A stretch of 64,000 nt of DNA from Pavona decussata (GCA_977016875.1 CDRNST010000197.1:496001-560000); one strand, 5' to 3'. Counted from the stretch's first letter, positions 36,214 to 37,062 are shown. Translations and numbers: made by a program. Notes: generated by a model from the sequence alone, not told the origin.

Positions 36214-37062
36214 ATGTCGAACGACAGAGAAACGTATCAAGATGGCAAGAAAAAAGAATTTAAAACTGATGAATTCTTTTCTGCGCTTTCCGCCACAATC
36301 AACTCTGGAAAATTTTGGCGTTGTATCCGATGGTGCGACGGAGGAAGTACGGTTATAATCACAAGTCCAGTACTTTTTGAAAGAGACGTTCTGCACAAGG
36401 AGCAGTGGAGACTGCAACTGAAGGTGAACGATTTTGCCAGTTTTGCTGATTTGCTCAAGCAAGTGGGTTTTGAAAAGGTTCTGAGTCAAAGGCCGTCCAA
36501 GGTGCAAAAGTTTCGGCATTGCGACTTCACGAAAAACTACAGAGGTTTCCAACACGTGACTAAGGAGAGAGCTGAACCACAAAGAAAAAGAACAAATGTG
36601 TCAGAGGAGGAAAGTCTCAAGCTTAGTGGTGCAGGTTCAGTAAAGGAAACGAGTCAAGAAATAAATCTGGCGCAGAAAGTAAAGCGGCAAAAGAAAGTAA
36701 CTTTTGAGGATGAAAGCGCGATGGCGGCTAAGAAGAGAAAGAGAAACGTTACAAATGGCGAAGAAATGTTTACGCACGGCAAGAAACGAAAGATTGCTGA
36801 CCCAGTCACCCCAAGTGCTCCAATCAAGCACGATACACTCAGGAAACAAATGCGCAGAATCTACAGCGCAGATGAAATGACCGCTGCCCAGGCATTGCTC
36901 AGTTTATCAACACCAGTTGTGTTTGCGAATTACACTGCTATGGAACTAATGGCAGCTCAAAGCCTGGTTAATTTGTCAAGATCTTGTATTGTATCGCAGG
37001 AAAGAAGTGTTCGAGAATTGGAGGCGGCGTACGCCCTATTGCAACTTTCTAACTCAGCTTGA
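36214..37062 (+). CDS. Intronless protein (282 aa) with a divergent HSF-type winged-helix DNA-binding domain, basic NLS-like clusters and three C-terminal ExxAAxxLxxLS repeats
   Basis: The N-terminus follows the HSF DBD pattern F..L...I.W...G....I.....F...VL ... FASF..LL...GF.K ... F.H..F. KKRKR and KKRKI are basic clusters. Repeats are EMTAAQALLSLS, ELMAAQSLVNLS and ELEAAYALLQLS. Confidence 0.8.
   Translation: MSNDRETYQDGKKKEFKTDEFFSALSATINSGKFWRCIRWCDGGSTVIITSPVLFERDVLHKEQWRLQLKVNDFASFADLLKQVGFEKVLSQRPSKVQKFRHCDFTKNYRGFQHVTKERAEPQRKRTNVSEEESLKLSGAGSVKETSQEINLAQKVKRQKKVTFEDESAMAAKKRKRNVTNGEEMFTHGKKRKIADPVTPSAPIKHDTLRKQMRRIYSADEMTAAQALLSLSTPVVFANYTAMELMAAQSLVNLSRSCIVSQERSVRELEAAYALLQLSNSA

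Follow-up and report, generated by a model that had tools for sequence, protein, structure and literature searches.

The window, a 64-kb stretch of Pavona decussata DNA, contains an intronless gene for a protein that joins a heat shock factor (HSF)-type winged-helix domain to a basic linker and a C-terminal tail of three short repeats (Table 1). Contigs from RNA libraries show no splice joint within the coding sequence, and in six other coral assemblies the gene is likewise a single uninterrupted ORF in each fetched locus. The contigs, assembled from the metatranscriptomes of two coral libraries together with two runs that bear the species name of the window, span 36061-38202 without splice joints and leave 34802-35405 empty, which supports an unspliced transcript, probably of about 2.1 kb; they give neither its strand, its ends nor its level. 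The first-pass annotation, made from the sequence alone, had named an unexpressed or unconserved ORF as grounds for abandoning its reading, and the results point away from both: RNA contigs cover the gene and the ORF is intact in seven assemblies. It had also called for a check of copy number, and a tblastn search detected no second copy of the gene within the 64-kb window.

Table 1. Position of the HSF-like gene and its parts, in window coordinates.
Feature	Residues	Position	Strand	Basis
Conserved 5' leader / core promoter		36058..36213	+	Alignable across four coral loci
Coding sequence	282 aa + stop	36214..37062	+	Intronless; ORF list
HSF-type winged-helix domain	18-110	36265..36543	+	Pfam PF00447, AF2, Foldseek
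Altered recognition helix (FASFADLLKQVGFEKV)	74-89	36433..36480	+	HSF4 alignment; Asp79 replaces invariant Arg
Disordered basic linker	111-214	36544..36855	+	AF2 pLDDT 27-37, no long helix
Repeat 1, EMTAAQALLSLS	221-232	36874..36909	+	Predicted helix 219-231
Repeat 2, ELMAAQSLVNLS	244-255	36943..36978	+	Predicted helix 242-257
Repeat 3, ELEAAYALLQLS	268-279	37015..37050	+	Predicted helix 266-281
3' untranslated region, probable		37063..38202	+	Metatranscriptome contigs 37087-37977 and 38021-38202, unspliced

Immediately 5' of the ATG, a leader of about 155 bp is kept in four coral loci and the DNA farther upstream is not. A GCGCGC...GCGCGC palindrome (36058-36082) lies within this leader and takes the form GCGCGCGC-TTTAGAA-GCGCGCGC; it is conserved in the four loci and sits near the 5' end of the RNA contigs, which start at 36061 and 36082. 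The palindrome may represent a core-promoter or leader hairpin element.

The gene is found between two genes for Cys-loop receptors, both in the window and in its closest relative, locus L001, where a 20-kb neighbourhood is collinear with the window at 84-91% nucleotide identity. These flanking receptor genes are common to the two loci only: L004 and L006 adjoin COX5A and L005 a glutamate-receptor-like gene, which indicates that the position of the gene is not conserved across corals. Three paralogous, nicotinic-receptor-like Cys-loop genes form a loose cluster in the window (9358-10455, 28992-32340 and 45578-46678; 39-46% mutual identity), with the HSF-like gene placed between the second and the third, as in L001. 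Two direct copies of a tRNA-derived SINE, 81% identical, bracket the gene (35742-35880 and 38490-38735); they have a very high RNA-library depth, many chimeric contig joints run between them, and the first includes a degenerate tRNA reported by ARAGORN (35774-35846, minus strand). A further locus, L002, from one related coral, is flanked by a reverse-transcriptase zinc-finger ORF and a 613-residue piggyBac-type transposase ORF (L002:5760-6485 and 12084-13925), and in comparison with the window synteny was found nowhere past the transcription unit. A seeming stop of similarity at the ends of the transcript had suggested that L002 is a retrocopy, but the notion was dropped, as the 3' similarity runs on, interrupted by indels, and no poly(A) tail is present.

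The DNA-binding domain (DBD) is recognised by the Pfam model HSF_DNA-bind (PF00447) across residues 21-110; the match scores 34.6 bits (E=2.8e-8), where the gathering score is 22. In a full-length AlphaFold2 (AF2) model, built on an alignment of 28 family sequences, residues 18-110 are predicted with confidence (pLDDT 76-90) and the remainder of the protein is of low confidence. All of the top 50 PDB matches returned by Foldseek are DBDs of HSF4, HSF2, HSF1, HSF5 or the fungal Skn7, with a probability of 1.0 and a target-normalised TM of about 0.7; a PDB sequence search by itself gave weak HSF matches (E about 0.2), and the fold search was needed. The first-pass annotation had described the HSF scaffold as intact and would have yielded to the lack of an HSF-fold match; both the Pfam model and the predicted structure bear its description out. 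Moreover, the HMMER alignment with HSF4 has a five-residue gap in HSF4 just ahead of the recognition helix, corresponding to a 5-residue insert in the coral protein. This insert had been likened to that of HSF5 and HSFY, and the likeness agrees with the position of the protein in the DBD tree described below.

The linker between the domain and the tail is rich in Lys, Arg and Glu, with 25 Lys and Arg residues against 14 Asp and Glu, and 19% of its residues are hydrophobic. It is predicted to be disordered across the region examined for the HR-A/B trimerisation element of canonical HSF1/2/4, and the lack of a long helix together with the low hydrophobic content argues that HR-A/B heptads are absent, in line with the earlier statement that none were evident. 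Four clusters in the linker resemble nuclear localisation signals (RKR at 124, KRQK at 157, KKRKR at 173 and KKRK at 190), and K174, R175, K190 and K191 are invariant or almost so. Because of these basic clusters the protein is probably nuclear.

A word search retrieved 42 homologues of about 280 residues, with 40-89% identity, almost all of which carry PF00447. A profile built from 24 family members matched just 195 of 1.84 billion cluster representatives at E<=0.001 (18 at E<=1e-30), which shows that the family, referred to here as D-type, is well separated from ordinary HSFs, most canonical members of which go undetected by the profile. The D-type clusters include Acropora millepora LOC114976219, A. 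digitifera LOC107333093 and a hypothetical protein of Desmophyllum pertusum, and their only database annotation is "uncharacterized". The complex/robust division of stony corals separates Acropora from Desmophyllum. The next tier of the profile search (E 1e-13 to 1e-8) consists of cnidarian HSF5-like proteins of 280-420 residues that have a canonical helix, FKT(R/K)NFTSFVRQLNLYGFRKV, and a single C-terminal [AV]VQxLLxL motif; this set is termed R-type. Its members appear under diverse names, including "SFL1-like" in Actinia (XP_031568145.1), LOC100206582 in Hydra (UniRef "Heat shock factor protein 5"), "uncharacterized protein" in Montipora and "Heat shock factor" in Paramuricea, with others in Exaiptasia, Nematostella and Hydractinia, and the nearest named relatives of this tier outside the cnidarians are insect and fish HSF5. 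Also found by the family profile were two long proteins, P0059 (1091 aa) and P0069 (1146 aa), in which coiled-coil-like spacers lie between six tandem HSF-type domains; their sources are probably protists.

D-type and R-type genes occur in the same assemblies at similar coverage, L004 (D) with L007 (R) in ERZ25067868 and L005 (D) with L008 (R) in ERZ26168041, which makes them paralogues and not orthologues. In a maximum likelihood tree of 66 DBDs (LG+C20, ultrafast bootstrap and SH-aLRT, fungal root) the D-type sequences form one clade (100/98), which falls within a larger clade (100/97) together with cnidarian R-type, bilaterian HSF5-like and HSFY-like sequences; the canonical HSFs lie outside and the branching order inside the larger clade has no resolution. 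The gene is not a one-off: the D-type occurs throughout the Scleractinia as a paralogue of the HSF5-like gene of cnidarians.

The most unusual part of the domain is its recognition helix, which reads SFADLLKQVGFEKV where other HSFs have SFVRQLNxYGFxKV. When aligned by HMMER, FASFADLLKQVGFEKV lies opposite MASFVRQLNMYGFRKV of HSF4, and the wider signature FKT-x-x-F-x-SF(V/I)RQLNLYGF is replaced in the window by LKVNDFASFADLLKQVGF. HSFs owe their specificity chiefly to an invariant Arg (Arg71 in HSF1, Arg63 in HSF2), which forms bidentate hydrogen bonds with the guanine of GAA, and a neighbouring Asn adds a water-mediated contact (PMC8379338). In the coral protein the helix 3 Arg that contacts the guanine of nGAAn in a functional HSF is Asp79, and the neighbouring Gln, Asn and Tyr are also replaced. 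The earlier claim that the base-contacting Arg and its neighbours had been lost extends to the family, since among 34 distinct D-type helices the Arg position is occupied by Asp in 27, Ala in three, Lys in two and Asn and Gly in one each, and never by Arg. The structural residues of the D-type helix (Phe, Phe, Leu and Gly-Phe) are invariant, the remaining outward or DNA-facing positions vary among orthologues, and its net charge averages 0.2, compared with +3 for the R-type helix. The R-type helix is near-invariant from Hydra to corals, and all R-type and HSF5-like sequences inspected retain FKT...SFVRQLNLYGF. This pattern fits a fold that has been retained for something besides GAA reading, and from the residues involved it is probable that nGAAn/HSE DNA is no longer read through helix 3.

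Some DNA affinity may persist, because the whole domain still has a net charge of +5 and because Asp is favoured at the Arg position and not random; an Asp within a recognition helix could bring a new specificity instead of none. Hence the D-type protein might still be a sequence-specific DNA-binding factor, with the Asp helix reading some other motif and the tail recruiting a co-regulator there, an unlikely reading but the strongest of the alternatives. It would account for a net positive DBD under purifying selection (omega 0.15-0.53) and for the retention of Asp in most of the helices, which indicates that the position does not drift freely, and mouse HSF5 itself deviates from classical HSE recognition (PMC11059408). 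However, a single fixed base contact does not sit easily with a position that also admits Ala, Asn, Gly and Lys, nor a new target with a helix of net charge near 0 whose other DNA-facing positions are widely variable among orthologues. Loss of GAA reading through helix 3 is preferred here as the account of the altered helix.

The tail contains three matches to AAxxL[LVI]x[LIM]S with a period of 23-24 residues, and not one of 200,000 composition-preserving shuffles of the protein reached even two. Three tandem amphipathic repeats had been described by the first-pass annotation, and they lie exactly where it placed them, each largely within a predicted helix. A tail-only AF2 model based on 39 sequences yields three helices (pLDDT 70-81) with a pTM of 0.27, a combination of confident local helices without a confident fold that would be typical of docking motifs; a folded three-helix bundle was considered and is unsupported by this model. 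Repeat 1 is the best conserved of the three and contains the Ala and Leu that are invariant in the tail alignment. All three AAxxL repeats are present in the window, as had been stated, but the Ala-Ala of repeat 3 is not kept in every coral lineage and is Ser-Gly in one of them; in acroporids repeat 2 lacks the Leu-Ser end and finishes in HFFK and not in Asn-Leu-Ser. The Ser-Gly lineage also has a conserved extra C-terminal CWKLFRHPI. These changes were read from an alignment of the tails of P0020, P0025, P0028, P0029 and P0281 and of P0023, P0027 and P0032.

The resemblance of the repeats to the Sin3-interacting domain of KLF-type factors, also noted at the outset, is closest in repeat 2, where MELMAAQSLVNLS can be set against MDFVAAQCLVSIS of KLF9. 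With its flanks, MELMAAQSLVNLSRS is identical to KLF9 residues 7-21, MDFVAAQCLVSISNR, at seven of 15 positions and mostly conservative at the others, in a comparison of short motifs that was picked after the fact. As a ligand of SIN3A-PAH2, KLF9 residues 4-21 serve as a benchmark (PMC12102759), and the Sin3-interacting domain of KLF16, reported to be the same as that of KLF9 and of KLF13, no longer binds Sin3 when proline substitutions are introduced (PMC3293586). Of the two published PAH2 motifs, the aptamer- and TIEG-derived A[AV]X[VA][LV] (PMC1557813) is fitted by repeats 1 (AAQAL) and 3 (AAYAL), whilst repeat 2 (AAQSL) is one residue off, with Ser where the motif requires Val or Ala. For the type II motif A(A/V)X-phi-phi-XX-phi, derived from HBP1 (PMC7948954), none of the three D-type repeats has the bulky hydrophobic residue at position 4. 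All three regions are predicted to adopt the amphipathic alpha-helix expected of a PAH2 ligand. Docking of the tail helices to Sin3 PAH2 is, on these motif likenesses, a plausible but tentative proposal, somewhat less likely than not; the missing position 4 residue, the Ser of repeat 2 and the lineage-specific losses in repeats 2 and 3 count against it.

Beyond the basic patch that follows the R-type DBD, conservation is confined to an island of 20 residues of the type EYMYQKLQEEQ-(M/I)(A/V)VQLLLSL(R/K), the core of which, AVQLLLSL, is an exact fit to the type II PAH2 motif. This C-terminal island is found from Hydra to corals, with AVQLLLSL or VVQSLLSL as its type II core, and is borne by proteins P0064, P0067, P0241 and P0073; the R-type genes of the coral assemblies lie at L007:3001-3858 and L008:3001-3849. 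A search of the searchable literature found no description of the cnidarian HSF5-like tail motif or of the coral D-type subfamily. Because a tail motif of this kind is common to D-type and R-type and was seen in no bilaterian HSF5-like sequence inspected, it argues that the two are sister paralogues. The coral D-type took over this tail helix as one copy from its R-type parent and subsequently tripled it. The deepest D-type branch, formed by P0055 and P0057 (locus L014), has the helix SFVDQLL, with Asp, a single tail helix, ELAAVSGLLSLQ, and an extra PPFPHDKYCLP, and may mark the state before the tripling. Atypical HSFs, the fold itself and Sin3 motifs of the KLF type were already known; what is new is a coral subfamily that lacks the Arg, the tripling of its motif in tandem and the PAH2-type motif in cnidarian HSF5-like proteins.

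When the helix and the tail are considered together, the D-type would be a protein that has lost GAA reading and whose helices dock to Sin3, acting as an adaptor or a decoy; this combined reading is the best single explanation, though the balance for it is close to even without quite reaching it. As a multivalent Sin3/HDAC adaptor it would reach chromatin via other contacts, and as a decoy it would vie with the DNA-binding HSF5-like parent for a common partner. A different use of the tail is conceivable, if rather improbable, in which the helices are not Sin3 motifs but bind each other, the single helix of the parent or another shared partner such as a co-activator, and the D-type is an Id-like dominant-negative or modulator of HSF5-like complexes. 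The helix type is common to both paralogues and is the parent's only conserved tail element, its Ala/Leu-rich faces are suited to helix-helix packing, and mouse HSF5 oligomerises via non-DBD regions although the HSF5 type has no HR-A/B (PMC11059408). Association of this sort would, however, leave unexplained both the extended match to a PAH2 ligand and the exact type II PAH2 fit of the parent, and confident packing of the three helices is not seen in the AF2 model.

The rate of change of the gene was followed by pairwise Nei-Gojobori dN/dS, a check that the first-pass annotation had recommended, and is 0.31-0.60 for the D-type overall. By region the values are 0.28-0.74 for the linker and 0.16-0.78 for the repeats, beside the range given above for the DBD; omega is below 1 in all three for every pair, and the first 17 residues have values of at least 1 in two pairs only. 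With the ORF intact in seven assemblies out to a dS of about 1.1-1.3, the D-type gene is under purifying selection. It evolves roughly four-fold faster than the R-type: in the same genome pair, where dS is 1.32 for both, the D-type has an omega of 0.34 and 45% protein identity and the R-type an omega of 0.09 and 78% identity. Between L001 and the window the flanking receptor proteins are 98% identical and the HSF-like protein 89%, which likewise indicates that the gene evolves fast. These two signs of speed are what a decaying or functionless duplicate, with an ORF surviving by chance, would have in its favour, but such a reading is highly improbable and is largely refuted by selection and conservation, as no assembly examined, across dS above 1, has a broken ORF, omega stays below 1 in the DBD, linker and repeats of all pairs, conservation extends to the 5' leader, the gene is covered by RNA contigs and Acropora and Desmophyllum both possess the family.

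The biology of the proposed Sin3-docking adaptor or decoy can be approached through its HSF5 kinship. Mouse HSF5 lacks HR-A/B, binds a single GAA and is required for male meiotic prophase (PMC11059408, PMC12366260), whereas the heat-shock response proceeds without it (PMC12366260). A gene that carries the name HSF5 is expressed by sperm cells in the cell atlas of Stylophora (PMC8162421). By analogy with HSF5, this suggests germline biology and not heat stress for the D-type; the germline is the better grounded of the two because of the HSF5 kinship and because the mouse protein is not needed for the heat-shock response, and the kinship lends no support to a link with heat tolerance. As the HSF5-named gene marks Stylophora sperm cells, the two paralogues are candidates for a way into the study of gametogenesis in corals. 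It might even be that the D-type is a natural antagonist, in stony corals, of the germline HSF5 programme, a DNA-blind duplicate whose three helices soak up or multivalently recruit the Sin3-type partner of its parent, but this is a speculative suggestion and unlikely as it stands. Were it true, cnidarian HSF5-like factors would be Sin3-dependent repressors and corals would tune gametogenesis by means of a decoy encoded by a paralogue.

An invariant DNA-reading arginine defines the HSFs, and a conserved coral subfamily has dropped it yet stays under selection. The D-type thereby offers a natural experiment on the role of the HSF fold once GAA is no longer read. Moreover, the cofactors of the atypical HSF class are poorly known, and the R-type tail helix that matches the Sin3-PAH2 motif is a concrete candidate for a mechanism.

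Among known systems, the canonical HSF1/2/4 proteins share the winged-helix fold of PF00447 with the D-type, but the latter is without the invariant Arg and HR-A/B and belongs to a separate clade. KLF9/13/14/16, KLF10/11 (TIEG) and HBP1 offer a likeness of the tail, a short amphipathic helix in which Leu/Val and Ser come after an Ala-(Ala/Val) core; in the D-type this motif is attached to an HSF domain and not to zinc fingers or an HMG box, and it is C-terminal and present as three tandem copies. Vertebrate HSF5, together with HSFY and HSFX, resembles the D-type in its DBD-tree clade (100/97), in the insert between helices 2 and 3 and in the lack of HR-A/B (for the domain layout of HSF5 see PMC11059408), and the HSF5 DBD in entry 8zys gives the highest identity among the structural matches (28-31%). 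Unlike the D-type, HSF5 retains the Arg and binds GAA-containing DNA (PMC11059408), is much longer and, in the one fish protein inspected, has no tail helix of the AAxxLLxLS type. The closest counterpart is the R-type, with about 270-420 residues. Its HSF domain likewise has an insert ahead of helix 3 and is followed by a basic patch, HR-A/B is absent, and the C-terminus has a conserved amphipathic helix of the [AV][AV]QxLLxL type; it is found in the same coral genomes, and the coral copies examined are single uninterrupted ORFs. It differs from the D-type in keeping the canonical FKT(R/K)NFTSFVRQLNLYGFRKV, in having one tail helix and not three, and in evolving about four times more slowly.
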